Shown: piece by piece, positions 679 to 63,453 of the stretch
Numbering within the stretch: position 1 is the stretch's first letter
Layout: every line of letters starts with the position of its first letter
Assembly: GCA_030704615.1 (NCBI GenBank)
Contig: CM060732.1
Span: 30,876,001 to 30,940,000 of the forward strand
DNA from: Takakia lepidozioides
Lineage: Eukaryota; Plantae; Bryophyta
Length of the DNA: 64,000 nt
Direction of reading: 5' to 3'
Program-made: the position numbers and the translations under genes
The notes under the pieces: generated by a model
The model's input: only the letters and a program-made list of their open reading frames with translations
What the model was told of the DNA's origin: nothing
The model's database searches: none

Positions 679-680
679 CT

Positions 681-18415: not shown

Positions 18416-21400
18416 TCTTCAAAGTGGTGAAAGCGGTTAGCGTCCCGTACAACAATTGCTCGGCCAACAATCTTTGAGATGAATTTGGTGGAGGTGTGGC
18501 AGTCACCACACACTCGAAGATTCTTAATGAGACGGAGAGGCGTCCTAGGGGGCGTGCTGATCAGCCCAAAACCAATGGCCAGCTTCTCACTGTGGTGGCA
18601 AAGAGAAAATTCCTTTTCCTCCTCCCCCACATCATGCAATACAAAGCGCGTGTCAGGCACATGTCCCGCCTCCTTCATCTGCCCAGACAATCTTCTCAGC
18701 TCAGCATGGATTTCCTTCATTCTGGGATGCAACTTGTCATCTACAACAAAGGTGTGCACCCTGTTGCCAACCTCAATGCAGCAGCGACCTGGCTCCTTTC
18801 TAACCCCTCTGACCTTCATCATTCTTCTCACCTTTGCAGTATCATCCCACCTGCCAGCTGCAGCATAGATGTTTGAAAGCAACACATAAGTCGCGGCATC
18901 ATGTTCATCCCACTTGAGGATAGATGTTGCTGCACGTTCAGCCATCTCCACATTGCCATGGATTCTGCAGGCACCAAGCAAGGCCTTCCACACCACAACA
19001 TCTGGATTAATTGGCATCTTATTAATCAGATCCACTGCCTCATCCAGTTGTCCCGCACGTCCAAGAAGGTCCACCATACAGCCAAAGTGCTTTACTGTCG
19101 GAGTGACACCATGATCTTGACTCAGGGAATCAAAGTAGCGTCTTCCTTCATTCAGTAGGCCAGTGTGGCTGCATGCAGAGAGAACACATATAAAGGTGAC
19201 ACTGTCCGGCTTCAAGCCGTTCTTTTGCATTCCTTCAAATAGTTGCAGGACCTCTCTATGACAACCATGCTGGGCATATCCTGCGATCATCGTATTCCAC
19301 GACACCACATTTCGTTCAGCCATATTGTCGAATACTCCCTTCGCATCCTCAATGCACCCACATTTGGCATACATGTCCACCAGGGCAGTGTTCAGAATGA
19401 CATCGGGTACAATGCCAGCTTTGACGATGTCACCATGGACCTCTTTGCCCTTTTCCAGGGCTGCCAGGCTTGCACACGCATTGCAAACGGAAACAAACGT
19501 GACATGGTCGGGCTTCACCCCTTCCCCCATCATTTGCTCATAGGTCTCCAAAGCCTCCATCCCGCGCCCTTGCTGTGCATATCCTGCAATCATTGCACTC
19601 CACGACACCAAATCTCGTTCAGCCATACTATCAAACACTCCCTCCGCATCCTCCATGCACCCACATTTTGCATACATGTCCACAAGGGTATTGTTTAGAA
19701 TCACATCTGGTACAATTCCAGCTTTGGCGATGCAACCATGCAGCTCTTTGCCCTTTTCCAGGGCTGCCAGGCTTGCACACGCACTGCAGACGCACACAAA
19801 CGTGACGTGGTTGGGTTTCACCCCTTCCCCCATCATTTGCTCATAGGTCTCCAGAGCCTGCATCCCGCGCCCCTGCTGTGCATACCCTGCAAGCATCGCG
19901 TTCCACGACACCACATTGCGTTCAGGCATATTGTTGAACACTGCCTTCGCATCCTCAATGCTCCCACATTTGGCATACATGTCCACGAGGGCATTGTTCA
20001 GAATGACATCGGGTACAATTCCAGCTCTGACAATGTCGCCATGGACGTCTTTCCCCTTTTCCAGAGCTGTCAGGCTTGCACACGCATTGCAAACGCACAC
20101 AAACGTGATGAGGTCGGGCTTCACCCCTTCCCCCATCATTTGCTCATAGGTCTCCAAAGCCTCCACCCCACGTCCCTGCTGTGCATACCCTGCAATCATC
20201 GCGCTCCACGACACCACATCTCGTTCAGCCATATTGTTGAAAACTGCCTTTGCATCCTTCATACACCCACATTTGGCATACATGTCCACGAGGGCATTGT
20301 TCAGAACGATAGCGGGTACAATTCCAGCTCTGACAATGTCGCCATGGACCTCTTTGCCCTTTTTCAGAGCTGCCAGGCTTGCACATGCATTGCAAACACA
20401 CACAAACGTGATGTGGTTGGGCTTCACCCCTTCCCCCATCATTTGCTCATAGGTCTCCAAAGCCTCCACCCCACGTCCCTGCTGTGCATACCCTGCAATC
20501 ATCGCGCTCCACGACACCACATTTCGTTCAGCCATATTGTTGAAAACTGCCTTTGCATCCTTAATGCACCCACATTTGGCATACATGTCCACCAGGGCAG
20601 TGTTCAGAATGACATCTGGTACAATTCCAGCTTTGACGATGTCACCATGGACCTCTTTCCCCTTTTCTAGGGCTCCCAGGCTTGCACACGCATTGCAAAC
20701 ACAAACAAACGTGATGTGGTTGGGCTTCACCCCTTCGCGCATCATTTGCTCATAGGTCTCCAAAGCATTCATACCACACCCATGCTTGGTAAATCCTGCC
20801 AACATTATATTCCACGTGATCAAAGATCGTTGAGGCATTCTGCTGAACACTTGGTGAGCATCCATGATGCTCCCGCACTTAACATACATGTTGACAAGGG
20901 TGTTTAGTACAGAAACATTTGGCGTGAATCCACTTTGGATGATGTGAGTGTGCACCTGCTTTCCAGCTTCCAGGCCTTTCATCTTGATGCACTTATGCAA
21001 GAGACAGACATACGTATCTGAATCTGCTGAAATGCCTCCTTGGTTTAAAGTCTGTAGAGCCTCTTTCAGTCTGCCTGCTTTACAAAGCATCTTCACATGC
21101 CCAGAAGGGCTAGAAGAGGCATTGTGGACTCCCTCTCTTGATCCTCTTCCAGAAGCTGTGGTTATGGTTGAGGTGCCTGATTTTATCAACTGTGCCGCTG
21201 CAGCTGCTGCCTTTAGTTGACAATCTACCCATGCAGGTTTCTTGTAGCTATGGATCCACAGGGAATCATAGGTAATCTTGTGCTTGAAATCTGGCCCCCT
21301 TGGATGAACCTGGACCCACACTCTATCCCTGCTCCTTCAGCTATCCATGCCTCTGAAATCATGCATACATCCTTGCCTTGCTGCTAGCAGCTGACAATGA

Positions 21401-22698
21401 CAGCCTAGAATTGATCCAGCAAACACCCGAACCCTACTTATCACACTAGATCCTATGCTGACTTGCGTCTGCTTCCAACAGGCATTCACCTTTTTGCCTC
21501 GATTGTTCCACCATTGATTGGGATCGGAAACGAATTCATTCCAGAGCTTCTCCTCGTCTCTGTTATCTGTTTTCCGACACTTTCCTGTTGCCACATTGGC
21601 AGTAACATGTCAAAATCACTCCAAAACCACCATAGATCCACCAACGAGCTAACTTGCAAAATTCAACATGAAAAGTATGGGACGACTCTGATAACAGGGA
21701 AAAAAAGGCTGAAAGGTGTTGAAGAAGGTGCCTTCATTAGCAAGGCCTTGTTCTATCAATTGTGCTGCTGCCGCTGCTGTTTCCAGTTGACCATCTACCC
21801 ACGCAGATTTCTTGTAGCTATTGATCCACAGGGAATCAGAAGTAATCTTGTGTTTGAAATCCAGCCCCCCTGGATGAATCTGGACCTCTATCCCTGGTCC
21901 TTCAGCTATCCCTGCCTGTGTACAAATCATGAATACATCCTCAGCCTTGCTGCTAGCAGCTGACACTGACGGCGTGAAGTTCTTCCAGTAAACACCCGAA
22001 CCCTACTTATTACAGTAGTTCCAATTCTGAATTGCATCTGCTTCTCTCTGTAGTCCAATGGCATTCACCTTTTTGTCTCCATTGTCCCACCATTGACTGG
22101 GGTCGGAAAAGTGTTCATTCCAAAGCTTCTCCTCATCTCTGTTATCTGTTTGTGGATACTTCCCTGCTGCCACATCGGCAGTAACTGGTCAAAGTCACTC
22201 CAAACCACCACAGATCCACCCAACGAAGTAACTTACACAATTCAATATGCATCTCAGGGCCGAGTCTGATGAGAGGGCAAAACAGGCTGAAATAGGTCGA
22301 AGAAGAAGGTGCCTTCACCACATTGTCCTTGACCTTCTGGCATGACCCATGGAGGATTTGACCGACCATCAACCCAAAAGGACCTCTTGTGTGTGCTGCT
22401 TGTGTCTGTAGTCAGGTAATGTCGAATTGGTCTGTGAGAACCACCACGATGCAGCTGAGCAGGCAGAGGTTGAAACACGGCCTGCTACGACCAAGCTGAC
22501 TCTCCCAAGAACCTTGTAAACATCAGGAAGAATACCAAATCATGGTACTAACAGGAGCCAAGAGCCCACATTTGCAGGATGGACAAGCTTCTTCACATCG
22601 TACATTAAGAAAATGCCACACCTTGCGATTGCGGTTGTCCCATCGTGAAGGATCTTTAAAAAACTCATGCCAGCTCTGCTCCGTGCTCCAAGCTAGAG
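18385..22698 (-). CDS. Locus A: PLS-class PPR-E1-E2-DYW protein with N-terminal OSB-type PDF motif modules
   Basis: Last exon 21309-18385 is uninterrupted: VHPRGPDFKHKITYDSLW.., ~20 PPR motifs (L,S,5xPLS,P2,L2,S2), E1/E2, PG box, HSEKLA, CGDCH, DYW. Upstream PDF exons: 21584-21490, 21879-~21735, 22163-22069, 22431-22319 (frameshifted) and ~22698-22622. The true start codon and transit peptide were not found. Confidence 0.88.
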
Positions 22699-24610: not shown

Positions 24611-27600
24611 TCACCAGTAATCCCCACAAGAACAAAGCCCATTTTGGAAGTGGTGAAAACGGTTGGCATCCCGTACAACAATTGCTCGCCCAACAATCTT
24701 TCAGATGAATTTTGTGGCGGTATGGCAATCACCACACACCCGTAGGTTCTTGATGATGTGGATAGGTGTCCCAGGGGGTGAGCTGATCAGCCCACAAGCA
24801 ATGGCCAGTTTCTCACTGTGGTAGCAAGAGAAGATTCCTTTTGCTCCTCCTCCACATTATACAATGCACAGCGTGTGTCAGGCAGGTACCCATCCTCCTT
24901 CATACACTCAGACAATCTCCTCACCTCAGCATGAATTTCCTCAATTTTAGGAGGTGATTTGTCGGCTACAACAAATTTATGCACCTGGTTGTCCACCTCA
25001 ATGCAGCTATGTCCCGGCTCCTTTTTGACTCCTCTATCCTGCATCATTTTTCTCACCTTCGCTGTATCGTCCCACATACCGGCAGCAGCATAGATGTTGG
25101 ATAGCAGCACATAAGTGGCAGCATCTTGTGGATTCAACTTGAGAAGGCATTTTTCTGCACGTTCTGCTACCTCCCATTGCCATGAATTCTGCAGGCGCCA
25201 AGCAAGGCACCCCACACCTCGGTACCTGGTTCAATTGGCATTTTGTTAATGAAATCATGTGCCTCATCCAATCGCCCTGCATGGCCAAGAAGGTCCACCA
25301 TGCAACCAAAATGCTCCAATGTAGGAGTGAGACCATGTCTTGACTCATAGAAGCAAAGTAGTAATGGCCTTCATTCACGAGACCTACATGGCTACAGGCA
25401 GAGAGGAGGGAGATAAATGTGATCCCATTTGGCTTCAAGCCTTCCTGTTGCATTTGTTCAAATAGCTGGAAGGCCTCCCTCACACCCCCATGCTGACTGT
25501 ATCCTGCGATCATCGCACTCCATGAGATCACATCCCTTGCAGCCATATTGTCAAACACTTGCCGAGCATCCTTCATGTTCCCACATTTGGAATACATATC
25601 GACAAGGGCAGTCTCCAAAATGATACCCAGCACAATTTGAGCTTTGATAATGTGATTATGGACCGCTTTGCCCTTTTCCAGGGCTGCCAGATTGGCACAT
25701 GCATTGAGAATACAGATGAACGTGACATTGTCAGGTATTACCCCTTCTTATATCATTTGCTCATACATCTTCAAAGCCTCCATACCACAACCATGCTGAG
25801 CATATCCTGCTATCATCGCCTCCATGAGACCACATTTCGCTCAGCCATATTATCAAACACTTGACACGCATCCCCACTATGCTCCCACATTTGGCATACA
25901 TGTTGACAGGCGCAGTTCCCAGAATGATGTCTTGTGCTATCCCAGCTTTAATGATGTCAGCATGGACCTCCTTGCCCTTTTCAAGATTTGCCAAGTTGGC
26001 ACATGCGTCGAGAATGCAAGTGAATGTGACCTTGTCAGGTGTGACCTCTTCTCGTATCTTTTGCTCATACTTCTTGAAAGCCTCCCTAACACACCCATGC
26101 TGGGAATATCCAGCTGTCATGGCACTCCAGGAGACCAAATCATGTTGAGCCATATTGTCAAACACTTGCCGTGCATCCTTCACGTTACCACATTTGGCAT
26201 ACAGAACGACAAGAGCAGTTTCCAGAATGATATCTTGTGCGATCCCAGCTTTAATGATGTCAGCATGGACCTCTCTGCCCTTTTCCAGAGTTCCTAGGTT
26301 GGCACATGCCTTGAGAACGCCAATGAATGTGACGTTGTTGGGTGTCATCCTTCCTGTATCATGTCCTGATATATCTCAAGAGCCTCCCTACCAAACCCAT
26401 CTTTCATATATCCTGCAAACACATCTTGTCCAGGGATTTTCGCAAATACATTGCGTGCATCCACCACACTCCCGCACTTGGCATACATGTTGATAAGGGT
26501 GTTTTGTAGAAAGATGGTTTGCTTGAATCCACTTTGGATGATGTGTGCATGCACCTGCTTTCCAACTTCTAGGTCTTTAGTTTTGATGCACTCCCGCAAG
26601 AGAAAGACATATGTATTGGTGTCTGCCACGATGCTTTCTTGGTTCAAAACGTGCAGTGCCCCTTCCAGGTGTCCTGCCTTACATACCATCCTCACATCCC
26701 CACCAGTGCCTGAAGAGAATTTGTGAACTCCCTTCATTGCTACTTTTTCAGAAACAGTGGCAGCGCCAGCTTCCAGCGATTGTTCCTGATTCAAACCTGC
26801 CACCCTGTATGACTCAAACTCTCAGTTACAAACCATCCCAGTAAAACACTCACACGATGCTATTTAACAGAGTCGAACCAATTTGAGTTGTTTGTTTCGC
26901 AACCTGAATAATCAACAAAACAATACCTGTCGTATTCTTGGCCTCCAGCTCCATGGTGTACATCAACATCAGGAACACCCCCACATTGCGCTCCATCTCC
27001 TATAATGCTGGATAGCTCTGCTTTCTCACCCAAGGAGGGTTTGACTGACCCTCAATCCAAAGGCCCTCATTTGTGCGCTTATGTCTGAAGTCTGGAGATC
27101 TTGGACTTTTCTGTGCAAACCACTCCTGTGCAGCTGAGAAGCCATAGCTTCAATAGTCTTGCATGTGCCAGGCTACAAACACCAAACCTCCAAATATCAG
27201 GAACAGCCTTGCACAGTGTACTTTTGGACAACCTCTTGATAGAAATAGTAAGGACTGCTTTTGATGCCTTCTTGAGTTGAAGAGCAAAACTATCATTAAT
27301 ATAAGCTACTGGAAATGCAATCGAATCCATGAAATCATTATGCCACTTCAGTCCTCCTTGACAATGTCTTACGATCCTCAATCAAGATAGCCTCACCTTA
27401 TCAAACCTGTTGTCCCACCACTGTGAAGGATCTGAGAAGAATTCCTCCCGTAGTCCTTCCTTGCTCTGTGATTGACCTGAGCGCAAGCACTCAACAACCA
27501 TAAGAACTTGTTTCCGATTGCCTCAGTCTCTATTGAGATTACAGATAAATCTTAGCTTCTCCTCATTGACCTGGATCTTATTGAACATAGAGATCTTTAG

Positions 27601-30424
27601 CAGCTCCTACTTCATGTGGATCTCAACACTCACTCTCTCTCAAGAATGCTGAGAATGGCAGTGCAATCACAGCCACATGTCTCAAATGTGGGCTGAAGCA
27701 GCACAGCCGAAATTAGCATAGTGTTCACTTGTATAATCCTATACCGACCTTTAAATACACAATGTGTCTTCTTTTGAGGTTCACTGTGGCCAATGGGTGT
27801 TCCACAGCTGAGTTTCCATACCTGTTGACCTGTGCCCTTGGCCCCGGGATGTTGCTCAGTTACTGCTTCATATCTGCAAGTTCTGATATTTTTATCTTCT
27901 GGCCACCGATTATAGACGTGTGTGTGAGAGAGAGAATGTACTCATAAGACATTGTTTGCCGTAGCCTTGAGGCCATGGACCCCGCCCCCAGTTTGAGCAG
28001 AACACAAAGGGACAGAAACTACCTTTGTCAGGGGCTGACGCCGGAGTATGACTTACTTGAAATAGACAATTGATCCAAGTTCTCCAGATATCCTCTAGGG
28101 ATCCCTTCACACAAGCATCAATCTGCTTTATGTGATTTGCCCAATAACTAGACCCCAGAAGGGCTTGGGCTTCTGGCTCAGCCTTGAGATTTTCAAAGTT
28201 GGTAAACAGAGGTACAGGAACAATTCCATTGATGGATTTGAAGAGGGTGTCTCTCTGGTGAGAATCCCCAGGACAACGAATCAGAAAGTGGAGATTGTCT
28301 TCAGGTTGCCCACACAATGGGCATTTGCATCCCCCTTTCCTCTCTGCGTCTGTTTGCAGTTCAAAGCTAGGCTTCCTGCCCTGAGTTTAAATTTCAGTCT
28401 AGTGCCGAGAGTGGGTAAGCCCTTAAGGTCATCCATGATGGCCTCACCCATGACACAGACTGGAAACAAGTTCAGGGAAGTTTTCTGCCTAACTTCATTT
28501 TCATCAGACAATTTCCAATTTCAGCCTGTAGTGTCCAAAGCCACGTCTGTTGCCAGGAAATTGTCTGAGAGAGAGAGAGAGATAGGGCTTGTCTTGTCAT
28601 GACAAGAAAGGATCTGTCAAGACTTGACCAGATCAGAAAGTATTTTTTGAAAAAACCAAGACAAAACTTTGCAAGGCACCATCACCCTTCTCCTAAACCT
28701 TGCTCCTGATTCGTTTCACACTTCTGGGTGATCGGGGTGGGTGGTGGGGTTTGTTAGAAACCCTTCAAAACCCCCCACCTTTCTTCATAGTGACAGACAT
28801 CATACTGAACAATATTTGTATCCACTGTACTGTCACACTGGGATTTCCAGAAAGCAGAAATTCGTGTTTTTAGCATGTCAATGACCTCCAAGTCAGCCTT
28901 AACCTTTACTTGAGCAAACCAGTGCTTTAAGTATAGAGATCTCTGCCACGACATATGTCTGAGCGTAGTATTTCCCTACGAGGATAATTCAGTTTCATTG
29001 AAGTAACGTCAAAATGAATACTTCCCTGAAAATCACACGTCTCAAAACTGAGATAAAACCCAAGTCTTCCACCATAGCCCAAAAGGGGTGTACTTCCATG
29101 TCTTGAAACAAAGCACACACAGAATTCAAAATGAAATCACTCATCTGGGCTGTAGACTGAGATTGATCCAAGTCAAGACAGGTCTTCAGAGTCTTCTGGT
29201 AACAGATCCCAAGGGCAGATTACTTCCGTAAATTCGATCCCTCAAGGAAACCTGAGGCTGGCGTCAAGCGCTGTGCCATTCTTCTTAGGCAGTGGCTGCC
29301 TCATGTGATAGGTGATTTCCACCATCTATCCAGTGTACTATGTAGCAAAACTTACACATACAGCTTAGAAATCCATGAAAAGTGAAGGACCCTCATGCGC
29401 CCGTCCCAAAAACGACCACATCCAACAGAATGCGTGTTAGTGAGGATGCGCGAGGTGAGTAGCAGGTCTTCACACTTGCTATCGCTGTCCAACATGCATT
29501 TCTAAGCAAGTGAAAGATTGCAAGAGTAATAGTAAAGGTGTGATATTGCACAGAAGCTTGAAAGTTTGAGGCAGACCAGTCTGCGACGCAGCATGTATCC
29601 ATTCTTGTAGCAAGAAGTAATTGCAAAGCACAGGTAAGGGCCAAGTGTAACCTCCTGCTCATGTCAACAGCTGAGCCAAAGCTTCCCTATAACTGCATAG
29701 GAAGCTCGACCAGCATAATGAAGGCTAGGCTGGGCTTAAATCTTGCTAGCCGCAGCCTTGTTGAAACTCTTGAAGGCTGTGAGCTGTGTGCCCGACACTG
29801 TCGTACTTTCAGGTAGCAGCTTAAATTGCAGGGTTAGGGTTCTCAAACCCCAGCACATGGGCAATAAATCCCACAAGGCTCTAGGCCAGGGAATGAATTT
29901 TGCGGCAAATGTCTACTTGTCAATTTCAGGACATACATAGGAAAAAATCGATTTATCCCACCTGAAATATTCTACCCAAGACTAAAGAGAGAGAGAGAGA
30001 GAAATTCATTCTACACAAAGTACGACCTAAGCAAAACTTGCCCGTCACACTAAAGGGGTGGTCAAAGGACGGAGAGAGATAGTCCCAGTATGCACTCCTG
30101 CGCAATTTCTGCTGGGGCACATGGACACCACAATGCCCAGCTCCCTCCGAACCACACAATTTAGAGAACCAATAAGGTGTGCAAGATTCATTTGTCTATA
30201 CCTCTCTTCATTACCCCTGGAGGCGTGGGAGGTGCAGCAGCTGTAACTCGCAAGGATCTGGAGGTTGGCATTGCCGAGCTGGACACCCACTTCAAGTCCA
30301 CAACCTGGCCCGTCAATCTGCTGCATGATGTGAGGGTTGCAGCCTGTTCACCGCAAGGCGAAGACAAAACCTTGGGTATGATCTCTTGCTGCGCGCTCAC
30401 GAGAGCTGCATCAGGCGAAGCCAT
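24611..30424 (-). pseudogene. Locus B: OSB-like/PDF-PPR-DYW pseudogene
   Basis: PPR-E-DYW exon 26804-24611 has many frameshifts and stops but keeps HSEKLA, CGDCH and CSCGDYW. PDF exons: 27476-27397 (GQSQSKEGLREEFFSDPSQWWDNRFDK) and 27110-26927 (KSPRSPDFRHKRTNEGLWIEGQSNPPWV). Putative ATG at 30424 after a 5'UTR intron (30535-30429). The 5' part is less certain. Confidence 0.8.
27930..28600 (-). mobile_element. 3' fragment of a LINE-like element (ORF2 C-terminal zinc knuckle)
   Basis: GTRLKFKLRAGSLALN followed by CGQPEDNLHFLIRCP..R and ..LEDIW. Bounded by (GA)n runs. Homologous copies lie at 63560-64000. Confidence 0.65.
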
Positions 30425-30883
30425 CCCTCTGTCAGAAAACCGAGAAGAACAAGAACGTTAATCATACATTGAATGCTAATCACGCTTTACCATAATACCG
30501 CCTTCAAATAACATTCAATTCAAAGTAGATTTCACCTTTGATGGATGATTTCACTGTTCGCAAAGAGGAGCCATATGGACAAGGTTTGGTTTGAAGAAGG
30601 AAAGATGCGAGGCAAGATAAGTGCGAGGGAGAGAAGGGTCCAGAAGGGCGGTGCCTTTCTGCGCAAGTTTCTGGGCTGCGGAAGGGTCCGCCTACCTACC
30701 CTGCAGCCGTGAGCCGTGTGTACATAAGATGAAGCAACTCCGTCTCCGGAGCACGCCTCAGCATAAGCTCATACAATTGTATTTGCCGATCTCGTGTTGT
30801 CTGACTTGTCTTCAGCTTTCAAGAGAGTTATCTGCGAGCGCTTCAGGATTTTTAGAATTGCTCTGCGTCATAGTGGAGACGCA

Positions 30884-31642
30884 ATGGGAGGGACAGAGGC
30901 GTTCCCAAGTCTAGGGAAGCATTGTAGTGAAGATACCTGTCACCAGCTCGATTTTCTTCCCTTCAAGTGTGACGCGTGCTTACAGGTACAGAGCAATCAG
31001 GTCCTCATATGAATTGATCAGCTCTACGTCAGTTGCTTGGAGATGTTATAGTTGAGAAGGCAAATTTGCTTACCTAGATGGAAGTAAAATATGTAGGTTG
31101 ATTATTGCATCAGTTGTTCGTCGACATCATAGCTTCTGACAGGCTACTCTTGCCATCTTGCATATGATCAGGTGTTTTGTCTTGAACATCGCTCATACAA
31201 ATCGCACAGCTGCCGCAGGGCCGATGTTAAAGACGTCAGTGTTCTCATCTGCCCAGTATGCGCATCAACCGTGAGAAAAGTTTTCAATGAAGACTCCAAT
31301 CTGACCTTGGAGAGACATTCTCGGACAAGGTGTGATCCCAGCAATTATCCGAAAGTTATGACAAAGCCAAAGTGTCCGGTCAAGGGATGCCGTGAAGTAT
31401 TGACCTTCTCCAACAAAGTAGCATGTAAAACCTGCAGGCAAGAGACGTGCCTGAAGCACCGTTTCCCGGCAGATCATTCATGCTCGAGCTCCAACATTGC
31501 TTTGCAGAAAAGACCAGTCACATCTGTGCCTGGGGGACTGTTTTTAGGATATTTGTCAGCCCGTAGTGGTACTCAATGTGGCAGCAGCAGCAACGACAAG
31601 ACGTTGGACCAAGAGAAGGGCTTACCGTTGAGGGCACACTAA
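30884..31642 (+). CDS. AN1-AN1 zinc-finger stress-associated protein (SAP12-like), 2 exons
   Basis: Exons 30884-30985 and 31172-31642 with GT-AG, phase 0. Motifs: [32 protein letters not shown] and C.VKGC...LTFSN...C..C....CLKHRFP.DH.C. Confidence 0.93.
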
Positions 31643-34526: not shown

Positions 34527-35384
34527 TCAAAAACCCTTCAACCAGGCCTTGGCAATTTCAGGGTTGTTAAATATGTTATCTGAAAGCTCCGCCAAAATTG
34601 CATTCACAGTAAGCAAAACGATTGATGAACCGAAAATGATGGCCACCACCACCCCTGTAGTTTCCAGCACTTTCTTAAACGAAGGCCACTCAACGAGTTT
34701 CGTCTCTTCCAGCACACCACCCCAGAAATCCGTGGTACTTGCAGGATTGCCTAGGCCTGCAGTCATCCTCTCTTTCCTGAATGCATTTAAAGCCTTCCCT
34801 ATCTCGTCCTCTGACAGCGGCCTCTCACCATCATCGGCGGTTTTGGTTGGAGTTTCTGCGTCCCTCTCGTCAGCAATAACTGCTGCCCCATCCATCACAA
34901 GCGCATTGTTCTCAGACGAAATACCAGCAGAATCCCCTTCCCCCGAAGCCCCAGCTTCTTCAACAAGATCACTACCAGCACTTCCTGACCCGGATCCTAC
35001 ATCCTCCTCAAATGGAACATCATCCTTTGAGATTTCCGGCGACGCAGGGGTCCTAGAGGAAGTGAGAACCCCGTCCGACAATGGAGGAGACGAAATCTCG
35101 GAAGTCTGTTGATTTCCTCTCGTCTGCTTCTGTGCGGCCGTCCGCACAGACCAGGAGGCTGGTGCATTGGCGCACCTCCTAGAGGCAGGACAGTGATCCA
35201 GTGGTGACGCAGCTGAGAAGGCAGACAAGGAAGATTTATGCTTTACAGAGAGGATTGTCTGTAGGGAGATCGGCAGACAGTGCCGGGCTGCCCTTGCTGT
35301 GGCTGCCACATTTCTGTGTGAAGGCTCCAAAATTGGAGGCAACACCGAGCCCACTGTAAACCCACTCCCTTCACTCGATCCCAT
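34527..35384 (-). CDS. SECE1: Plastid preprotein translocase subunit SecE1
   Basis: Ser/Ala-rich transit-peptide-like N-terminus. C-terminal FWGGVLEETKLVEWPSFKKVLETTGVV...LLTVNAILAELSD SecE signature. Start taken at the ATG at 35384. Confidence 0.88.
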   Translation of the reverse strand: MGSSEGSGFTVGSVLPPILEPSHRNVAATARAARHCLPISLQTILSVKHKSSLSAFSAASPLDHCPASRRCANAPASWSVRTAAQKQTRGNQQTSEISSPPLSDGVLTSSRTPASPEISKDDVPFEEDVGSGSGSAGSDLVEEAGASGEGDSAGISSENNALVMDGAAVIADERDAETPTKTADDGERPLSEDEIGKALNAFRKERMTAGLGNPASTTDFWGGVLEETKLVEWPSFKKVLETTGVVVAIIFGSSIVLLTVNAILAELSDNIFNNPEIAKAWLKGF

Positions 35385-35572
35385 CCCTCTCTCCGACTTC
35401 TCCAAACACCTCCCGCTCAGGATACCTGCAAAAACAAAGAAGATGGTGATGTGGGTAAGTATGCAACTAGCCTGTACAGGCATCGCCTTCACAGACAGTG
35501 CAAGGGATGAATATGTTATATGGGAGAGACGTCACCCTGGCTATCTGGTCAAATGGTAGTTTTCTATACTCC

Positions 35573-35581
35573 CTAGGGTTT
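35573..35581 (-). promoter_or_regulatory. Telo-box (AAACCCTAG) in the SECE1/CPN10 divergent promoter
   Basis: CTAGGGTTT lies between divergent ATGs 265 bp apart. Confidence 0.5.
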
Positions 35582-35648
35582 GGCATTGGAGAGGGGGAGT
35601 ATCGCGGCGTGCGCTGCAGTGGGGTTGTTGAGGGTGCAGGAAGGGGAA

Positions 35649-47415: not shown

Positions 47416-47916
47416 ATGAATAGACCGAGGCATGTAGGGGGGCCGCCATCGTCACCATGGATACCAGTTGCAATTATAGGGATAATCTTCTTGATTGCAG
47501 GGGGGCCGTTCTCCGCTCGTCCGGATCCCATCGCCTACCAAGCAGCCAGGACAGCAAGTGGTTTCCAAATGCCTGTCCTATGGATTCCTGTAGTCTTAAT
47601 TATAGCTCTCCAGTGGCTAGCTGCGTCTAAACCTGGTAGTTGGTGGCCTCGGCAACAGCACAGGTACCCCCCTCGGCGGATGCCACCCACTTACAATCGT
47701 CGTGGAGGTCTCTCTTCCTTCGCGCCACCTCTTGACCAGTACGCCAACGATGCGAGCTGGGTGTTGCCTTCGTTCATGGATTTTGGAGGGCATTGGCTTT
47801 TAATTTTGCTTGCGATTGTGTTGTTTACCATAGTTGGATCAAGCCCCTCTTACGCCGTTCGACCGTCCTTTCCGTGGTCTCTCTTCTCACGTCGGGCTGC
47901 GGTGGTTCCGTTCTAG
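47416..47916 (+). CDS. Uncharacterised small membrane protein (three hydrophobic segments)
   Basis: 166-aa ORF with 3 TM-like stretches. Upstream CCAAT (~46929), TATA-like CTATACAA (~46974) and a plausible 5'UTR intron (~47204-47347). Confidence 0.6.
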   Translation: MNRPRHVGGPPSSPWIPVAIIGIIFLIAGGPFSARPDPIAYQAARTASGFQMPVLWIPVVLIIALQWLAASKPGSWWPRQQHRYPPRRMPPTYNRRGGLSSFAPPLDQYANDASWVLPSFMDFGGHWLLILLAIVLFTIVGSSPSYAVRPSFPWSLFSRRAAVVPF

Positions 47917-49157: not shown

Positions 49158-52100
49158 ATGTCCTTGTGCCATCTCTCTCACTCGTACCCCCCCATGGCGC
49201 CGTCTTCCCCTTCTCATGACCGCGCACGCCCACCCCATGCCCAAGCCCCTGCCCTCTCGCTTCAGTCATGCGGGAGGCGTCGCGTCGTGCAGAGGCTGTG
49301 CTGTGGAGCTGAAATCGGCATCTCCCTTGGCAATGCGCAGAGGACGACATCCCCTGCATGTAGTTGCTACGCCGCCTCGCCAACCTTCAGGGATGCCATT
49401 CAAATTAGGTGCTAACACGACACTGTTTGCGCTTTCCCTTCTTGAGTTCGCTGTGTTGTGTGGAGTTGTCTTTTGAGCAATTCAGCAGCAACAAACTTAC
49501 TCTGGGCAAAGAAGCAAGAAAGCACAAGGGCCGGTTAGACAAGGTCGATAATTGATATATCTCGCACGTAGGTTAAGGTGGAAGCATGGAGCAGCGCTGG
49601 CAGGAGTTGTATAAGGATCCTTCACAAAGGTGGCACTGCAGCGTTGCCAAGGTGAGCTTTCTTCATGTAGGATGTGAAGGAGTCATAGGGAGTTTGAAAG
49701 AACTGTGGTATGATCATGTTGCGCCTACTGCGTTGTAGCCCTAGTTGTTGAGTGAGGTTCGAAGCGCTTTGCGCTGCAAAATCTGCTTTACTGCCAATAC
49801 CGTAGGTTGTTATTTCGAAGCAGGCAATGAAAGTAGGATGCGCAAGGTCTTTTCCTGGAGTTTGCAAGGTACTTGGGAGAGTTGAGACTGGCTGCTCAGC
49901 TGCTCCCTGGTCGTTTCCACAGACCACTGCGAAATCTCCAGTCTGCAGACATAAGCAGCGCACACAGGAGGGCTTGTGGATGGAAGAAAAACTAATTGCC
50001 ATGCCACAAGATCGAGAACAGTCTGGTGATGGTGGAAAGATATCAGAGTGCGGTTCCAATTCTGGTGTAAATGGTGGAGCTCCTTGGAAGGTCGCAGATG
50101 AAAGTGAGTATGCCTCAGTGACCTGATTAGAGGGGCAGCCTTGTCATGCACAAGCTTGTTTAGCATCTGTGTAAGCGTGGACGTGTGCCTCATTGTGTAG
50201 AGTCCAATGGAGCCCACAGTGACTAGCGTGAATGTTGAAAGCTACACTAGCTCTCTCCATAAAGGAACCGGTAAAAGTGTTGATGATGTCAGAGTTTCGG
50301 GCACAAAGGTCTACCATGGAGCATGGAGCAGTGCTGGCATGAGTTTTTTAAAGATCCTTTACAATGGCAGGACAACCGCACTGGCAAGGTTGGCTTTCTT
50401 AATAGATGATGTGAAGAAGTTTGTCCGTTCTGCTAAAGTGGTCAGTATCATGATTTGTTCTTTTTCCTGGTGTTTACGCGGTACTCAGGAGGGTTAGCTT
50501 GCTCTTAGGAAGCCGTGTCCTAATCTATCCAGTTGCACTGGTGGTTCTTGCAGACCAATCCAATCCCGCCTGACTACAGACACAAGCTATGCAAACAAAA
50601 GGTCCTTTGGGTTGATTGTCAGTTGAATCCTCCTTGGGGGGAAAAAGAGCCAGGTGATCTCATGACACAAGGTCAAAGACACCTTGTTCTTCAACACATT
50701 TCAGCCTGTTTTGCCCTATTTTTCAGACCCCAGTCGGTGGGACAACCGAGGCAAAAAGGTGAATGCCTGTTCACTTACAGAGAGAAGCAGACAGCAAGAT
50801 GCATTGCCAAACTTGGAGATTGTCATGCACTCTCTCTCTCTCCCTCTTCCCAGCACATTTTGAAATTCTTGGGAGTAATTCAGCATAGGAACTAGTCTAT
50901 GATAAGTAGGGTTGGGGTGTTGATTGTCTTTGTCAGCTGCTAGCAGCAAGTGGAGGATCTATGCATTTTTTGGTGCTCAGGCAGGGATAGCTGAAGGAGC
51001 AGGGATGGACTGTGGGTCCAGATTCATCCGAAAGGGATTGAAAGCTACAAGAAACCTGCATGGGTAGATGGTCAACTGAAAGCAGCAGCGGCAGCACACT
51101 TAATAACATCAGTCACCCCCACTATGGCCACAGCTTCCAAAAGAGGACCAAGAGAGGGAATGTATAATACCTCTTCTGGCACTTCTGGGCATGTGAGGAG
51201 GTTATGTGAGGCAGGGCAACTGAAAGCGGCTCTACAGATTTTAAATCAAGGAGGCATTTCAGTCGATTCAGATACTTGTGTCTGTCTCTTGCATACGTGC
51301 ATCAAGATGGAAAGCTTGGAAGCCGGAAAGCAGGTGCACGCTCGCATTATCCAAAGCGGATTAAAGCCAAACGTATTTCTATATAACACCCTTGTCAACA
51401 TGTATGTTAAGTGTGGGAGCATTGTGGATGCAAACAAAGTGTTCAACAAAATGCCTGAACGCAGTTTGATCACATGGAATATTATGATGGCAGGATTTAA
51501 CAAGCATGGGTATGGTAGGAATGCCTTGGAGACATATGAGCAAATGATAGTGGAAGGTGTGAAGCCCAACAACATCACTTTCGTTTGTGTCTGCAATGCA
51601 TGTGCGAGCCTGGCAGTCCTGGAAAAGGGCAAAAAGGTCCATGTTGACATCATCAAATCGGGAATTGTACCAGATGTCATTCTGAACACTGCCCTGTTAC
51701 ACATGTATACTAAATGCAGCAGCATCGAGGATGCAAAGGGAGTGTTCAACAATATGGCGGAACGAAATGTGGTATCCTGGAATGTGATGATCGCAGGATA
51801 TGCCCGGCATGGGTATGGGATGGAGGCTCTGGAGACCTATGAGCAAATGGTGCGGCAAGAGATGAAGCTGGACCAGGTCACGTTTGTTTCTGCTTGCAAT
51901 GCATGTGCGAGACTGGCAGACCTGGAAAAGGGCAAAGAGGTCCATGGTGACATCATCAAAGCTGGAATTGTACCAGATATCATTCTGAACACTGCTTTGG
52001 TTGATATGTATGCCAAATGCGGCAGCATCCAGGATGCAAAGCGAGTGTTTGACAATATGGCCAAACGAAATGTGCTGTCCTGGAGCGCAATGATCACAGG

Positions 52101-53903
52101 ATATGCCCAGCATGGGTGCGGGATGCAAGCTTTGGAGACGTATGAGCAAATGATGCGGGAAGGGGTGAAGCCCGACCGGGTCACGTTCGTTTGTGTCTGC
52201 AATGCTTGTGCGAGCCTGGCAGCCCTGGAAAAGGGCAAAGGGGTCCATGGTGACATTATCAAAGCAGGAATTGTACCAGATGTCATTCTGAACACTGCCT
52301 TGGTTGACATGTATGCCAAATGCGGCAGCATTGAGGATGCAACAAAAGTGTTCAACAATATGGGCGAACAAGATGTGGTGTCCTGGAATGCAATGATCAC
52401 AGGATTAACCCAGCATTGCTGTGGGGTGAAAGCTTTGCAGATGTATGAGCAAATGATGCGGGAAGGGGTAAAGCCCAACCAAGTCACATTCATTTGCGTT
52501 TGTAGTGCGTGTGCAAGCCTGGCAGCCCTGGAAAAGGGCTGAGAGGTCCATGGTGACATCGTCAAAGCGGGAATTGTACCAGATATTATTCTGAACACTG
52601 CCCTGGTGGACATGTATGCGAAATGCTTCAGCATCAAGGATGCAAAGGAAGTGTTTGACAGTATGACTGAACGAAATGTGGTGTCCTGGAACGCAATGAT
52701 TGCAGGATATGCCCAGCATGGGTGCGGGATGGAGGCTCTGGAGACATATGAGCAAATGATGCGGGAAGGGGTGAAGCCGGACCAGGTCACGTTCGTTTGC
52801 ATTAGCAATGCATGCGCAAGCCTGGCGGCCCTGGAAATGGGCAAAGAGGTCCATGGAGACATCATCAGAGCGGGAATTTCACCAGATGTCATTCTGAATA
52901 CTGCCCTGGTGGACATGTATGCTAAATGTGGCAGCATCCAAGATGCAAAGGGACTATTTGACAATATGGCTGAACGAGATGTGCTGTCATGGAGCGCGAT
53001 GATCGCAGGATATGCCCAGCATGGTTGTCATAGAGAGGCCCTGCAACTATTTGAAGGAATGCAAAAGGAAGGTTTGAAGCCGAATAGTATCACGTTTATT
53101 TGTGTTCTCTCTGCATGCAGCCACGTTGGCCTACTGGATGAAGGAAGACGCTACTTTGAATCCCTGAGTCGAGATCACGGTGTCACTCCAACAGTAAAGC
53201 ACTTTGGCTGCATGGTGGACCTTCTGGGACGTGCGGGGCGATTGGATGAGGCAGAGGACCTCATTAATAAAATGCCAATCAAACCAGATGCTGTGGTGTG
53301 GAAGGCCTTGCTGGGTGCCTGCATAATCCATGGCAATGTGGAGATGGCTGAACGTGCGGCAACATCTATTCTCAAGTGGGATGAACAGGATGTTGCGACT
53401 TATGTGTTGCTGTCAAACATCTATGCCACAGCTGGCAGGTGGAACGATACTGCAAAGGTGAGAAAAATGATGAAGGTCAGAGGGGTTACAAAGAAGCCAG
53501 GTCGCTGCTGCATCGAGGTTAGTAACAGGGTGCACACTTTTGCTGTAGATGACAAATTGCACCCTAAAATTGAGGAAATCCATGCTGAGCTGAGAAGATT
53601 GTCTGGGCAGATGAAGGAGGCAGGGTATGTGCCTGACACACGCTTTGTATTGCATGACGTGGGGAAGGAGCTAAAGGAATTTTCTCTTTGCCACCACAGT
53701 GAGAGGCTTGCCATTGGTTTTGGGCTGATCAGCACGGCTCCTGGGACACCTCTTCGTGTCATCAAGAATCTACGGGTGTGTGTTGACTGCCACACCGCCA
53801 CCAAGTTCATCTCAAAGATTGTTGGTCGAGCAATTGTGGTACGGGACGCATCCGCTTTCACCACTTTGAAGATGGGGTTTGTTCTTGTGGGGATTACTGG
53901 TGA
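49158..53903 (+). pseudogene. Locus C: transit peptide-3xPDF-PPR-DYW pseudogene
   Basis: Exon 1 from ATG 49158 has a 2-nt deletion relative to locus D. PDF exons: 49572-49651 (TAA), 49923-50103, 50309-50388, 50554-~50680 and ~50716-50758. PPR-DYW exon from 51022 has TGA at 52540 and a 1-nt deletion at ~53850, with HSERLA and CVDCH. Close inverted paralog of locus A, including the 3' flank. Confidence 0.88.
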
Positions 53904-56871
53904 AACGATATTCTCCTGGAAAGGTGTGCTTCATTCATGATCTGCTTATCTTCTTTGTTCATCCACGATTGATCTGCTCTTGGGCCTCCAGATCAGAGGG
54001 GCTACCCAAAAATTATAAATAAATCGGTAGTGTTCCCTGATACGAAATGTTTCCGGCACTAGAAAATACATGCGGTTACTGTAGACCTATAATATCTAAT
54101 GATTTAGTATCCAAATATTTGTCATGTTGTCTTCTTTGGAGTCTAGCTTTGCCCCTTGGTAATGGTAGGAGGATCAGAAAGAGAGAGGTTTTTTTTCCTT
54201 CACCGGGAGGGATAAGTGGAAAGAAAGGGAAAGGGATGGAGGTGGGAAGAGCCTTGCTCTTATGGCAAATCCTTAGTAAGGGTGTAGCTGGTGGGCTTAA
54301 GAAGAAAGATTTGGCTGCACCCAGCCGCTTTCACCCACTGAAAGAAAACCAGCAGGATGAAGAAAATTTATAAAAAACTGTGTACATTTTTGGGATTTTT
54401 TATTTTAATTGAATATTTTTAAATTGAACGATTTGCTAAGAAGCTGTGTGTTAATTTTTGACAAAAGGTAATGATTTGTGTGGTGCTGTTTTTCTGTTGT
54501 ACAATGGTGGAATGTGCACCTAGGTCCAGAACTTCAAAAGCTCGCGTTCATTTGGATTGATGATCGAAATAAGAAATTGATCTAAATGCCCTCTGATACC
54601 TGTATAATAACCTTGATTTGTTTTTCGATAGGAATTGGTTGAGAATATTGGCGAGTATGGGTCTACCCGGCGTAGGTGAAAAGATATTCCATTATTGATT
54701 GGAGTTACGTTCCACAAGACCCCTCATACTACATCAGTTTGTGCATGTTGGAGCTCAAGGTTGACGACTCTTCCACCCACTCTAGAAAATTGCCTATGGT
54801 TCGAGAGTGCATTTGGAGCATGTACGAAACTTTTGTAGATTGTTTGTAGTTCCGTCAGGGATTGGTGATACTGCTGGTATCAGATGAAGTAGGTGGTGAT
54901 TACTGGCACATTTTTCAGTAGCTGCCTGAGTTGTTGATCTGAAACCAGCCAAAAGCTCTCCTACATACCCACTTTAAGACGAGACATGTTTTATTTTTCT
55001 TCGGAAGGAAAACAAGAGTGTATGACCACAGATCTTGACTGCATCCTTGTACAGTTACTAAATACTGTTCAGCCGGAGGTACTTCAGAAAGATCAAGAAT
55101 TAAACGAACAGTGCCATTACTGCATGGCCATGTTTGGAAACAGAAACTCTCCAGGTCTGAATTGAACGGAGATTAACAAAGGGGGGGACAAGATTTGTGA
55201 CCACGAAACATACTTCCCCGAGCATAGCTAGCCTAAACAATCTATCTCCATTACTGTCAGGCAGTTTAAAGAAAAACCCCAATGGAACTGCAATATGCAA
55301 ATCTGTTTGAGGAGGCCATTTGCCATGAAGTTTGAAAGTGTGTCAATTGGAGGTGGAAGGAGCACATGTTGCAACATCGAGTCTCTTCTAGTGTATGTAG
55401 AGTCTGGTATGGTCAGTATGAGGAGTAGCTGCAAAGATAAGAAAGAAACCAGACATCAATCTTGTTGCGCAGGAGGAGAATAACCTAGAGTGGAGTTGCT
55501 TGACACACAAGCTCTGAAAGCATAAGCCCCCAAAGCAATACAAGGCACTACAGTCATGGCCGTTCATAGAGGCCAAGCAAGGGAGGTAACAACCAGTGTT
55601 GAGAGGGTATTACTTTTTTTTAATACCAGCTGGGTCCTGGTATTGAAATATTTTTATTTTTCAATACCAGCCAGTTCCATAGTATTAGAATACTTACAAA
55701 ACTCTAATATCTGTTGGTTCTCAATAGATGTAGAATTTTGGATTTGCCGACGGTTATCGACTAGCCTAATGGTATTCCAATTGTACTACCAGCCGGTTAC
55801 CAACCCAGGTATAAATAATTTAATTTAATTTAATTTAAAGTGGTAGCCTGAGTATGGGGCCAGTTTATAAGTATACATGGTTTCCCAAAGAAAACAAAAC
55901 CGTTGCAAAAGCCCTTTGCATTCTATCCCATATTGTCAAATCAAGTGCAATCTGCTAGGAAAATTAGCTCCAAGTCTCACTGTCCAACATGGCCAAATTT
56001 GCAATGCAGAGATTCTTCTCATCCATCATATTAATCTGTTGATCAAGGAGAGATGAAGTCTTCAAGGTATGGCACGTTGGGTGAATTAGTAAAGAGCAGG
56101 TGGTGGGCTGGATTTGCACCCCAACTGGTTGATACTAATACCGTGTGCAGAGTCCCTGTTTTTACTTCTAATACGGTATTGCCTGGATATCGCCTTTGCC
56201 AATACCAGCTTAGGTAGGGTATTGACCAGTGTTAGACTGGTATATAGGGTCAAGCCGGGTATATTTTTGTATGCTTCTGTTGTCTTCGTCTGTTGTGTTG
56301 GAGCTGGGTGGTTTGTGAACTTCACATTACTGTTAGTATCTGATTTGTATAATTTATAAAGAAGTAACCCGGCTGCTATTTTGGTCCTCTTTTTTCTATG
56401 GACGAGATTCACATTTTACTGATGTTGTTCTTTACAGTCCTACCACAACCAAATTGACATTGCGTCCTCTTGGCCAGATTTATTGTGATAGAAATACAAT
56501 GTTGAACTAGTCAATAAATACATGATGTATTTGGAGAGGCAAAGGTCCCTTAGCCACAGAGGACTATCATATTCACTTCCTTTGCAGTTTTACATTTTGA
56601 ATCGCCTCACCCAGCTGTACTTGCTTCTAGCATGCAAAAGCTATAACATTCTAGGTTTTTTACCTCAGTAAGAATGTTGAAGCCTAGCCCCCATGAAGTT
56701 ATTTTACAAGATCCTCCATGATAGCAGCTATTGTTGTTTGGTTCTCCCGCTCTTTCCACTTTGGACTTTGTTTTCAGATTCTAAGATTGAAATAGTTGCC
56801 CACAGTTTCTCCTCTTTTCAGCACACAACACCTGTTTTTGTCTCCTGCCAGTTTCTCTCTCAAACTTTCAC

Positions 56872-61734: not shown

Positions 61735-61986
61735 CTTCGCTAACTCTTTTCCGGAGTCTCCGACCTTCGACCTTCGACGGTAGATATTAGAGAGCAGACG
61801 GCAGCTCTGCGCACGCACACACAAACAGCACTAGCGCTGCAAACTACAAAGCCCTAAACCCCAGCTGTCCCCACCAGAACGGCACCTCACATTAATCCCA
61901 AGTTTTGGGACAACCTCATACGAGATCCCACGATAATTTCGGGAAATGGTTTGGAGCGTCGGAAGTTCAGAATGTGAACGAACGAT

Positions 61987-62190
61987 GACGAATGTTCAGA
62001 GCCGTCTCCGCTCACGACGATCATCCATCACCGACTCGACGAATGTCCAGAGCCGTCTCCGTCGACGACGATCATCCATCACCGTCGCGACGATTGTTCA
62101 GATCCGTCTCCGTCGACGACGATCATCCATCACCGTCCCGACGAATGTTCAGAGCCGACTCCGTCCACGACGATCATCCGTCACCGTCCA
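61987..62190. repeat. Minisatellite, 4 x 51 bp
   Basis: Unit GACGAATGTTCAGAGCCGTCTCCGTCGACGACGATCATCCATCACCGTCNC, head-to-tail with no spacers. Confidence 0.92.
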
Positions 62191-62393
62191 CGGTGACGGG
62201 CTCCGTGACCCATCGCCGTGGAGGAAAGACTGTGCGTCCCTGCCCGTCCAAAATGTATTCCGTAGTTCGAACAGAGAGTGCGGTTATGGGGAGTGCCAAG
62301 GAAGGGAGCGACAGGGACCCTCGTTTGGAGCGCGCACCCGCTCTTGCAAGCACCTCGTGCAGCGGGGCTGCACGCACGCGGACCACGACGGCT

Positions 62394-63453
62394 ATGTCCT
62401 TGTGCCATCTCTCTCACTCGCACCCCCCCATGGCGCCGTCTTCCGGCCTTCTCATGACCGCGCACGCCGACCCCATGCCCAAGCCCCTGCCCTCTCGCTT
62501 CAGTCATGCGGGAAGCGTCGCGTCGTGCAGAGGCTGTGCTGTGGAGCTGAAAGCGGCATCCCCCTTGGCAATGCGCAGGGGACGAAATCCCCTGCATGTA
62601 GTTGCTACGCCGCCTCGCCAACCTTCAGAGATGCCATTCAAATTAGGTGCTAACACGAAACTGTTTGCGCTTTCCCTTCTTGAGTTCGCTGTGTTGTGTG
62701 CGTCGTAGGATCCAGGCTTGGAATTGTCTGTTGAGAAATTCAGCAGCAACAAATTTACTCTGGGCAAAGAAGCAAGAAAGCACAAGGGATGGTTAGACAA
62801 GGTCGATAATTGGGTATATCTCGCACGTAGGTCAACGTGGAAGCATGGAACAGCGCTGGCAGGATTTCTATAAGGATCCTTCACAAAGTTCACAATGGTG
62901 GGACAACTGCAATAGCAAGGTGTGGCTTTCTTGATATACCATGCGAAGAAGTTTGTCCGTTCTGCAAAAGTGGTCAGTATCATGATTTGTTCTTGTTCCT
63001 GGTGTTTACAAGGTACTCAGGAGGCAGCTTGGTCTTCTAAATCCATTCAGCTGCACTGTGGTGGTTCTCACAGACCAATCCAGGACGACCTGGCTACACA
63101 CACAAGCTATGCAAACAAGAGGTCCTTTGGGTTGATGGTCGGTTGAATCCTCCTTGGGTGAAGAAAGAGCCAGGTGATCTCTTGACACAAGGTCAAGGAC
63201 AATGTGGTGAGGGCACCGTGTTCTTCAACACACTCCGGCCTGTTTTTCTCATCAGCGTCGGTCGTAATTTTTCATGTTGAGTTGTGCAAGTTAGTTCGTT
63301 GGGTGGATCTATGGCGCTTTGGAGTGATTTTAACATGTTACTGCCAATGTGGCAACATGCAATTATCGGAAAGCAGAAAATAAAGACGAGGAGAAGCTTT
63401 GGAAGGAATATTTTTCAGACCCCAGTCAATGGTGGGACAATCGAGGCAAAAAG
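62394..63453 (+). CDS. Locus D (5' part): transit peptide plus PDF modules; probable PDF-PPR-DYW gene continuing beyond the window
   Basis: Exons 62394-62646, 62831-62919, 63074-63206 and 63377-63453 join without stops: MSLCHLSHS...PRQPSEMPFKLG|QRGSMEQRWQDFYKDPSQSSQWWDNCNSK|TNPGRPGYTHKLCKQEVLWVDGRLNPPWV...|ENKDEEKLWKEYFSDPSQWWDNRGKK. The last exon needs an alternative acceptor because the paralogous AG is mutated. Homologous to the locus C 5' region. Confidence 0.7.

Follow-up and report, generated by a model that had tools for sequence, protein, structure and literature searches.

The window analyzed here is a stretch of 64,000 nucleotides (nt) of nuclear DNA from a seed-free plant (Takakia lepidozioides, contig CM060732.1, positions 30,876,001 to 30,940,000). 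It holds four loci with PLS-PPR-E-DYW bodies, two read from the minus strand (A and B) and two from the plus strand (C and D), the body of D lying beyond the window's edge (Table 1). Each locus carries copies of a short module made up of two exons, which we call the WWDNR exon and the PDF exon after their motifs. Our analysis makes it likely that the four loci are a tandem birth-and-death cluster of paralogues with one architecture, in which frame-neutral PDF cassettes have been gained and lost. Most module copies in the window are now decaying.

In the proposed architecture, a transit-peptide exon ending in phase 1 would lead into one to three PDF cassettes and then into the PLS-PPR/E/DYW body. 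Each cassette would encode one mini-domain of ~50 residues of the type found in OSB proteins, interrupted by a phase-0 intron in the loop that joins its first two strands. Helix 1 and strand 1 would come from the WWDNR exon (phase 1 to 0), strands 2 and 3 and helix 2 from the PDF exon (phase 0 to 1), and in the last cassette the PDF exon would be fused to the PPR body. Since the exon pair is of class 1-1, adding or removing a cassette would keep the reading frame. By analogy with the binding of single-stranded DNA (ssDNA) by PDF in OSB1, the modules may give the editing factor a sequence-unspecific hold on single-stranded nucleic acid, and their copy number may alter the binding strength.

Census, borders and phases of the module

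We split the module alignment into halves and built two profiles, one per motif half, from clubmoss, moss, liverwort and fern proteins together with the window copies. A scan of the window's six-frame translation returned nine WWDNR halves and eight PDF halves (A1, A2, A3, B, C1, C2, a C3 remnant and D1) with E-values from 1e-19 to 1e-4. All of them lie just upstream of the four PPR bodies and on the matching strand; elsewhere in the 64 kb, the next-best half-motif matches had E > 0.1 and were nothing comparable. A sequence-only reading of this DNA had proposed the exon pair at all four loci, with three modules in A, three in C, at least one in B and at least two in D. Both halves were indeed found at each locus, and we count 3, 3, 1 and 2 modules, respectively, for D as far as the window reaches. 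While the listed modules are thus present, not all of them are intact: C1 contains a TAA, A1 has a frameshift and no longer has its donor, C3 is truncated, and B has a donor misfit.

Exon borders in the window were predicted from sequence. Every copy of the WWDNR exon is preceded by AG and followed by GT, is entered in phase 1 with two bases of a split codon, and ends with a full Lys codon, that is, in phase 0. The three exons singled out earlier as exactly 80 nt long (27476-27397, 49572-49651 and 50309-50388) have these lengths, borders and phases; lengths of the other copies are listed in Table 1. Only A2 and A3 offer an alternative acceptor, 18 nt upstream, which would lengthen the exon to 95 nt and leave the phase unchanged. 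The internal PDF exons of C1 (142 nt), C2 (100 nt) and D1 (100 nt) are predicted to exit in phase 1, in agreement with the earlier reading of the clear internal donors, so that each cassette length (222, 180 and 189 nt) is a multiple of three. A further phase-1 donor, AAA/gtgagt, lies ~40 nt downstream of the C1 PDF exon's donor. The predicted phases are accordingly 1-0-1 in C1, C2 and D1, as in a symmetric class 1-1 cassette. Exons were searched singly throughout, and concatenation was confined to the scripts for dN/dS (the ratio of nonsynonymous to synonymous substitution rates), the module tree and the module alignment.

At present the body of locus A is intact, two of its modules are readable and no start exon can be recognised. 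Its open reading frame (ORF) of 978 codons is intact and open back to 21321, and Pfam matches PPR_2 (E 9e-112), E_motif (E 3e-20) and DYW_deaminase (E 2e-43, positions 1-93/93) in it; E+ was also found. The translation reads HSE...CGDCH...GDYW, containing all catalytic motifs of a DYW domain, and the locus has the full make-up of a PLS-PPR-E-DYW editing factor, including HxE, CxxC and the terminal DYW. The closest public PPR relatives of the window's loci are 55-60% identical and come mainly from the clubmoss Diphasiastrum complanatum; a word search with the first 95 residues of the A ORF gave no match. A Transpos_assoc match of Pfam in A was rejected, as it lies inside a PPR repeat and has no passing stretch.

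By phase arithmetic, the four 5' exons of locus D form an open frame of 161 codons, in which the codons split at the joins encode Gly and Glu. With the peptide of D exon 1, tblastn matched a candidate first exon of B at 33% identity over 72 amino acids (E 0.018), a match so weak that we only infer this exon. The single module of B is the best match to the consensus despite the broken body.

Table 1. Predicted exons, bodies and duplicated unit of the four loci (positions in the window)
Locus	Feature	Positions	Strand	Remarks
A	Body	18385-21321	minus	Pfam and translation
A	Last exon	18385-21309	minus	Second half of A3 (PDFKHK...), PLS PPR array, E, E+, DYW; Pfam, translation
A	A3 WWDNR exon	21490-21566	minus	77 nt (95 via acceptor at 21584); phase 1 in, 0 out
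A	A2 PDF exon	21654-21879	minus	Alternative acceptor 21915
A	A2 WWDNR exon	22069-22145	minus	77 nt (95 via acceptor at 22163)
A	A1 PDF exon remnant	22313-22431	minus	PDYRHK; frameshift by 1-nt insertion; donor region deleted
A	A1 WWDNR exon	22622-22692	minus	71 nt; SRWDNR, one Trp codon missing
A	Tandem duplication	21175-22317	minus	Unit ~570 bp, 21175-21736 and 21745-22317; blastn 81%, 580 columns
B	PPR-E-DYW body	24614-26803	minus	Pseudogene, over frames -1, -3, -2, -1
B	PDF exon	27030-27110	minus	PDFRHK; in-frame TAG afterwards; 3' border tentative
B	WWDNR exon	27397-27476	minus	80 nt
B	Candidate first exon	30202-30424	minus	Inferred; ATG, 223 nt, phase-1 donor AGAG/gtatag
C	Exon 1	49194-49408	plus	ATG and conserved peptide in different frames owing to a 2-nt deletion compared with D
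C	C1 WWDNR exon	49572-49651	plus	80 nt; motif decayed to RWHCS
C	C1 PDF exon	49923-50064	plus	Decayed (PVCRHK); phase-1 donor
C	C2 WWDNR exon	50309-50388	plus	80 nt
C	C2 PDF exon	50554-50653	plus	PDYRHK; 100 nt; phase-1 donor CAG/gtgatc
C	C3 WWDNR exon remnant	50727-50758	plus	32 nt; 5' half deleted; still phase 1-0
C	C3 PDF remnant and PPR-E-DYW body	51001-53943	plus
C	Body	51010-53943	plus	Pseudogene
D	Locus, 5' part	from 62430	plus	Body beyond 64000; only the 5' part inside the window
D	Exon 1	62430-62646	plus	ATG; 217 nt; phase-1 donor
D	D1 WWDNR exon	62831-62919	plus	89 nt
D	D1 PDF exon	63074-63173	plus	PGYTHK; 100 nt; phase-1 donor
D	D2 WWDNR exon	63377-63453	plus	77 nt; 6/6 conserved positions kept

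Age of the introns and identity of the module

A metagenome scan with a Sphagnum-type relative led us to fetch 72 loci, and these include two Sphagnum contigs, L021 and the genomic contig L014, that are 99-100% identical apart from exactly two GT-AG introns missing from L021. L021 thus provides a natural, unsplit copy of the motif, as it would appear in a spliced transcript. Their comparison shows that exon 1 (ATG to ..CGTC/gtaagt) ends in phase 1, that the WWDNR exon is 116 nt long, and that the junction following it, ..GAGAAG/ACAAAT, is in phase 0. An NCBI protein of Sphagnum jensenii (P0086), mapped on contig L001, gives the same picture: exon 1 stops in phase 1, and the WWDNR exon, here 80 nt long, is followed by a phase-0 intron. 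In 25 of the 25 moss-locus WWDNR hits other than that of L021, GT directly follows the same Lys (or Met) codon; the introns are 130-298 nt long, and an in-frame AG precedes PDF by four or five codons. The phase-1 and the phase-0 intron positions are old and shared with Sphagnum. Furthermore, a clubmoss model (P0076) contains a 21-residue insertion, with Val first, exactly at the phase-0 site, and it looks like read-through of the same intron. One PPR locus on a moss metagenome contig (L045:2279) has an unsplit PDF motif, ..WWDCRPEKVTERYPDFKHK.., that still begins with the donor-like GTGACT, and a stop follows at a short distance. The locus resembles a pseudogene from which most of the intron has been deleted.

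The number of modules also differs among the relatives. All Sphagnum loci fetched have one module each. Among clubmoss relatives, 35 proteins have one, three have two and one has three, to which P0001 is to be added with two and a half; the genes of P0074 and P0001 (2-3 modules) and of P0053 are multi-module genes of clubmosses. Upstream and proximal clubmoss modules fall into separate groups, which argues that the arrays are older than the expansion of the paralogues. In addition, a 1371-residue ORF (P0140) on a 4755-nt Logan contig, most simply an mRNA, has three good motifs before its PPR array.

The PDF motif has no model in the copy of Pfam that was searched. A word search with the Sphagnum motif returned only Sphagnum-type PPR proteins and no OSB because there are no shared words, and we therefore ran an exhaustive HMMER search (phmmer) of 1.84 billion representatives with the 54-residue motif of L021 as the query. 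At E<=1e-3 it matched 721 proteins, of which 231 also reached E<=1e-10. The matches include a Populus nigra protein annotated as "protein OSB1, mitochondrial-like" (P0175, XP_061960961.1; E 1.1e-23), with two motifs near its C terminus. Within the top 150, 55 proteins share the N-terminal region of poplar OSB1, which contains the OB-fold-like domain, and 13 have PPR bodies, the remainder being fragments or too diverged for classing.

The exon peptides of the window, each searched singly, align to both motifs of poplar OSB1 with E-values from 2e-9 to 9e-6. The WWDNR exon covers residues 224-239 and 299-313 and the PDF exon residues 243-272 and 314-343, so that the exon border falls at residues 313/314. 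The module consensus is LW..F...P..WWDNR..K....PDFKHK.....LW....PPW, and the modules carry the OSB-type PDF motif with invariant columns W5, D17, R19, P28, D29, L39 and W40; A3, B and C2 each keep 11 of 12 conserved positions. As judged from these alignments, the module is the OSB PDF motif of ~50 residues. Pfam found no SSB/OB family in the A ORF. When the N-terminal regions of ten of the top-ranking PDF-motif proteins, poplar OSB1 among them, were compared with the window by tblastn, only PDF modules were matched. Lacking an OB-fold exon in the window, these loci are not OSB genes.

An AlphaFold2 model of the 54 residues, made with a 40-sequence alignment, reached a mean predicted local distance difference test (pLDDT) score of 94. 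It consists of a helix (residues 2-10), a strand at WWD (15-17), a strand at FKH (30-32), a short strand at LW (38-39) and a helix (49-53). In the model, the site of the phase-0 intron comes directly after Lys22 and belongs to the loop that connects the first two strands. Neither exon encodes a fold on its own, and the unit of duplication would therefore be the exon pair. A sequence search yielded no solved structures, and the model had no significant relative (best Foldseek E 1.8, VIA Z 2.5); weak WW-domain rows in the structural search (E > 1) were not taken as evidence.

An earlier study, citing Zaegel 2006, states that the PDF motif suffices for ssDNA binding in OSB1/AtOSB1 (PMC6963530), and according to a 2026 survey the number of PDF motifs in OSB proteins varies from one to five per protein (PMC13393729). 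That survey also describes insertions in the part of the motif where our intron lies (positions 19-30), and it makes no mention of PPR, exons or introns (PMC13393729). Two proteins among our matches, P0130 (Kingdonia uniflora, 1160 aa) and P0131 (908 aa, JGI), have 13 and 11 matched PDF stretches and far exceed the OSB maximum of five in the survey (PMC13393729).

Copy-number changes, selection and competing readings

Two changes in copy number could be reconstructed. The tandem duplication of ~570 bp that had been noticed in locus A was recovered by blastn at the coordinates in Table 1. The duplicated unit comprises an intron, the WWDNR exon, an intron and the coding part of the PDF half, and it gave rise to modules A2 and A3, which are sisters in the module tree (99% support by SH-aLRT, an approximate likelihood ratio test). 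Of the two breakpoints, one is in the coding linker that follows the PDF half and the other, at a shared GGCACC, in the upstream intron. With a breakpoint in the coding linker, A2 received a new internal PDF exon without the original donor. A2 and A3 represent an old tandem gain by recombination. A second event is recorded in the D1 WWDNR exon, a hybrid that resembles C1 upstream and through its first half; at the switch point there is a 9-nt in-frame insertion, and from there on the exon and the intron behind it resemble C2. This is a loss by unequal recombination, in register, in which the WWDNR exons of modules I and II took part.

The bodies of A and C differ with a dN/dS of 0.27 at a dS of 0.39. 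For A2 and A3, compared over 65 codons, dN/dS is 0.24 (15 nonsynonymous changes at 157.5 sites and 12 synonymous changes at 37.5; Fisher p 0.001), and the WWDNR exons of A2 or A3 compared with D2 give 0.16. Relative to the introns, the nonsynonymous rate between A2 and A3 is ~0.6, and the exons have zero indels vs 27 gap columns in the flanking introns. These values point to purifying selection on the bodies of A and C and to weaker selection on A2 and A3. This argument is weakened by two further figures, namely the nucleotide identity of A2 and A3, which is 85-87% in the exons and 81-86% in the flanking introns, and the dN/dS of 0.63 between C2 and D1. Exon identity close to intron identity, together with the C2/D1 ratio, indicates that module constraint in the cluster is weak or was recently lost; we read the data as a whole as constraint that is real but weak or partly lapsed.

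Several observations weigh against a cluster of paralogues that goes on gaining and losing usable cassettes. B and C are pseudogenes. The body of B has at least three frameshifts, and its PDF exon lacks an in-frame donor that fits the PPR exon. Locus C has the make-up of a PLS-PPR-E-DYW factor apart from one in-frame stop (52540-52542) and one frameshift, within the DYW domain near 53850; in its 5' part, exon 1 is frameshifted, the second codon of the C1 WWDNR exon is an in-frame TAA, and a 39-nt in-frame deletion has removed the PDFKHK...LW core of C3. In A, neither blastn nor tblastn found a start exon between A1 and the 3' end of B. A2 has lost two invariant residues (R19G and P28L), and all phase-1 donors of its PDF exon are weak, the best one, CAA/gttagc at 21654/21653, standing one base before a stop. 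The sole in-frame acceptor of the A last exon, the phase-0 site gtccag/GTT at 21309/21310, is purine-rich and lies 36 nt downstream of a pyrimidine-rich one; A3 and C3 share a 5-nt insertion that leaves the better-looking, pyrimidine-rich acceptor out of frame. Finally, neither the A nor the D event is a clean intron-to-intron shuffle of a cassette, and the recombination in D, being in register inside homologous exons, would have kept the frame whatever the phases. The sequence-only reading had taken the symmetric phases to make the fusion an evolving family. The 1-0-1 cassette, the Sphagnum introns, the copy numbers that differ between loci and among clubmosses and the two reconstructed events support this in part; the missing clean shuffle and the extent of decay qualify it.

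The same defects could mean that the modules are relics. Under this explanation they are unused, the window is a graveyard of duplicated 5' ends from which no multi-module protein is made today by any of the four loci, and the differences in copy number record decay and rearrangement instead of an evolving functional array. The broken bodies of B and C, the frameshifted A1 without its donor, the missing start exon and weak A2 donors of A and the nearly equal divergence of exons and introns all agree with it, as does the last intron of D, which is broken by a repeat from ~63547 that is also present in the first intron of B. An ORF of 978 codons that has stayed intact in A at a dS of ~0.4 from C is not expected of a relic, however, nor are the low ratio and the absence of exon indels in A2 and A3, the open 5' exons of D with their correct phases, or the retention of nearly all invariant positions in A3, B, C2 and D2. 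We take this explanation seriously while leaning against it. Somewhat less plausible still is that only the cassette beside the PPR body is translated, as in Sphagnum, and that the upstream ones are untranslated or skipped, so that copy number does not alter the protein. In D, the only ATG exon is predicted to reach the body in frame via both cassettes, and the proximal WWDNR exons have no in-frame ATG; the clubmoss models and the 4.8-kb contig encode two to three good modules per ORF, and C2, an upstream module, keeps 11 of 12 conserved positions. These findings stand against the single module of every Sphagnum locus fetched and the more advanced decay of the upstream modules C1, D1, A1 and A2.

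That the peptides are random ORF fragments and the phases a product of splice sites chosen to fit is hardly credible. The window's exon borders are predicted rather than observed, which would leave room for such an artefact, but most halves match with E-values from 1e-19 to 1e-9 and only upstream of PPR bodies, the exon peptides match poplar OSB1, and the same borders are found in the intron-free Sphagnum contig and in an NCBI protein model. A birth-and-death cluster with frame-neutral cassettes remains our preferred account. A bolder extension of it, to which we give little credence at present, would make the PDF cassette a copy-number "dial," each mini-domain adding sequence-unspecific grip on nascent RNA or on a displaced strand of nucleoid DNA and so coupling editing to transcription. 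If this were true, the two-exon, frame-neutral layout would let paralogues in editing-rich seed-free plants retune their grip quickly, and PDF would be a general single-strand binder common to OSB proteins in DNA maintenance and PPR-DYW proteins in RNA editing.

Relation to known systems and neighboring sequence

PPR-DYW genes are usually described as intron-poor and as encoding a transit peptide, a repeat array and a deaminase, with only the transit peptide before the repeats. Locus A resembles these PLS-PPR-E-DYW factors in its P/L/S array, its E, E+ and DYW domains with their motifs, and the tandem duplication of PLS triplets inside it, whereas the loci described here differ in having two to seven small upstream exons for an extra mini-domain that presumably binds nucleic acid. 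With OSB proteins the loci share the same motif of ~50 residues and its variable copy number, but here the motif is N-terminal to a PPR-E-DYW body, and in OSB it is C-terminal to an OB-fold. Symmetric class 1-1 exon shuffling is classical in animal mosaic proteins. The cassette is similar to such exons in being in phase 1 at both ends and in having undergone both tandem gain and loss by unequal recombination. It differs from them in that two exons make up the unit and the phase-0 intron between them halves one fold, in that the protein is presumably one targeted to plant organelles, and in that neither event had both breakpoints in introns.

In the literature library that was searched, no paper links the PDF motif to PPR or DYW proteins or describes such upstream exons. 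To our knowledge, the PDF mini-domain is ancient and otherwise known only from organellar DNA-maintenance proteins. Its fusion to editing factors points to a contact, so far unstudied, of organellar RNA editing with single-stranded nucleic acid, and the cassette layout offers a concrete, testable account of how domain number can change. It also provides an annotation rule for hidden 5' exons: a phase 1-0 exon of 77-116 nt should be sought 130-300 nt upstream of a PPR ORF starting with ..PDFKHK. What is new here is the verified 1-0-1 cassette, its conservation in Sphagnum, the structural reason for the exon pair and the two reconstructed copy-number events. Earlier reports already describe the PDF motif, the binding of ssDNA by it and the way its number varies among OSB proteins (PMC6963530; PMC13393729).

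Further rearrangements surround the loci. The PPR array of A contains, at 19265-20964, tandem repeats of ~303 nt, or one P-L-S triplet, that are 84-86% identical to one another, which indicates that the array expanded by internal duplication, as in C (51398-53118). A tandem duplication of ~300 bp (17818-18133 and 18110-18424, 90%) spans the last codons of A and the 3' flank. Adjacent to it, 17726-17873 resembles the 3' end of the C module-I PDF exon and the following intron (50022-50168) at 74%, in the orientation of A, and may be the stump of a further locus. The repeat in the first intron of B (28040-28208) occurs again in the last intron of D (63547-63717) at 88%. Adjoining the former is a 135-codon ORF (27910-28317, minus strand) without a Pfam match, which by eye only resembles the translation of 63840-64000 (plus strand) in inverted orientation. 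Upstream of D exon 1 and in the same frame is a long GC-rich ORF, within which a 51-nt tandem repeat occurs in four copies with 90% matches (61987-62189).

Positions 1-12000 of the window are Ty3/gypsy retrotransposon sequence. An element at 1-6929 has direct repeats of 679 bp resembling long terminal repeats (1-678 and 6255-6929, 94.7% identical) and ORFs for gag, protease, reverse transcriptase and integrase-SH3, and another gypsy fragment with reverse transcriptase and integrase lies at ~8700-11400. An inverted repeat of 365 bp (12268-12632 and 15647-16011, 96% identical), with ~3 kb between its arms, may represent a DNA transposon's terminal inverted repeats; no Pfam match was obtained for the ORFs between the arms. 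Two ORFs unrelated to PPR lie between the PPR loci, one encoding an AN1/ZFAND2-type zinc finger (31172-31642, plus strand) and the other, of 321 codons, with a C-terminal SecE domain (34527-35492, minus strand).

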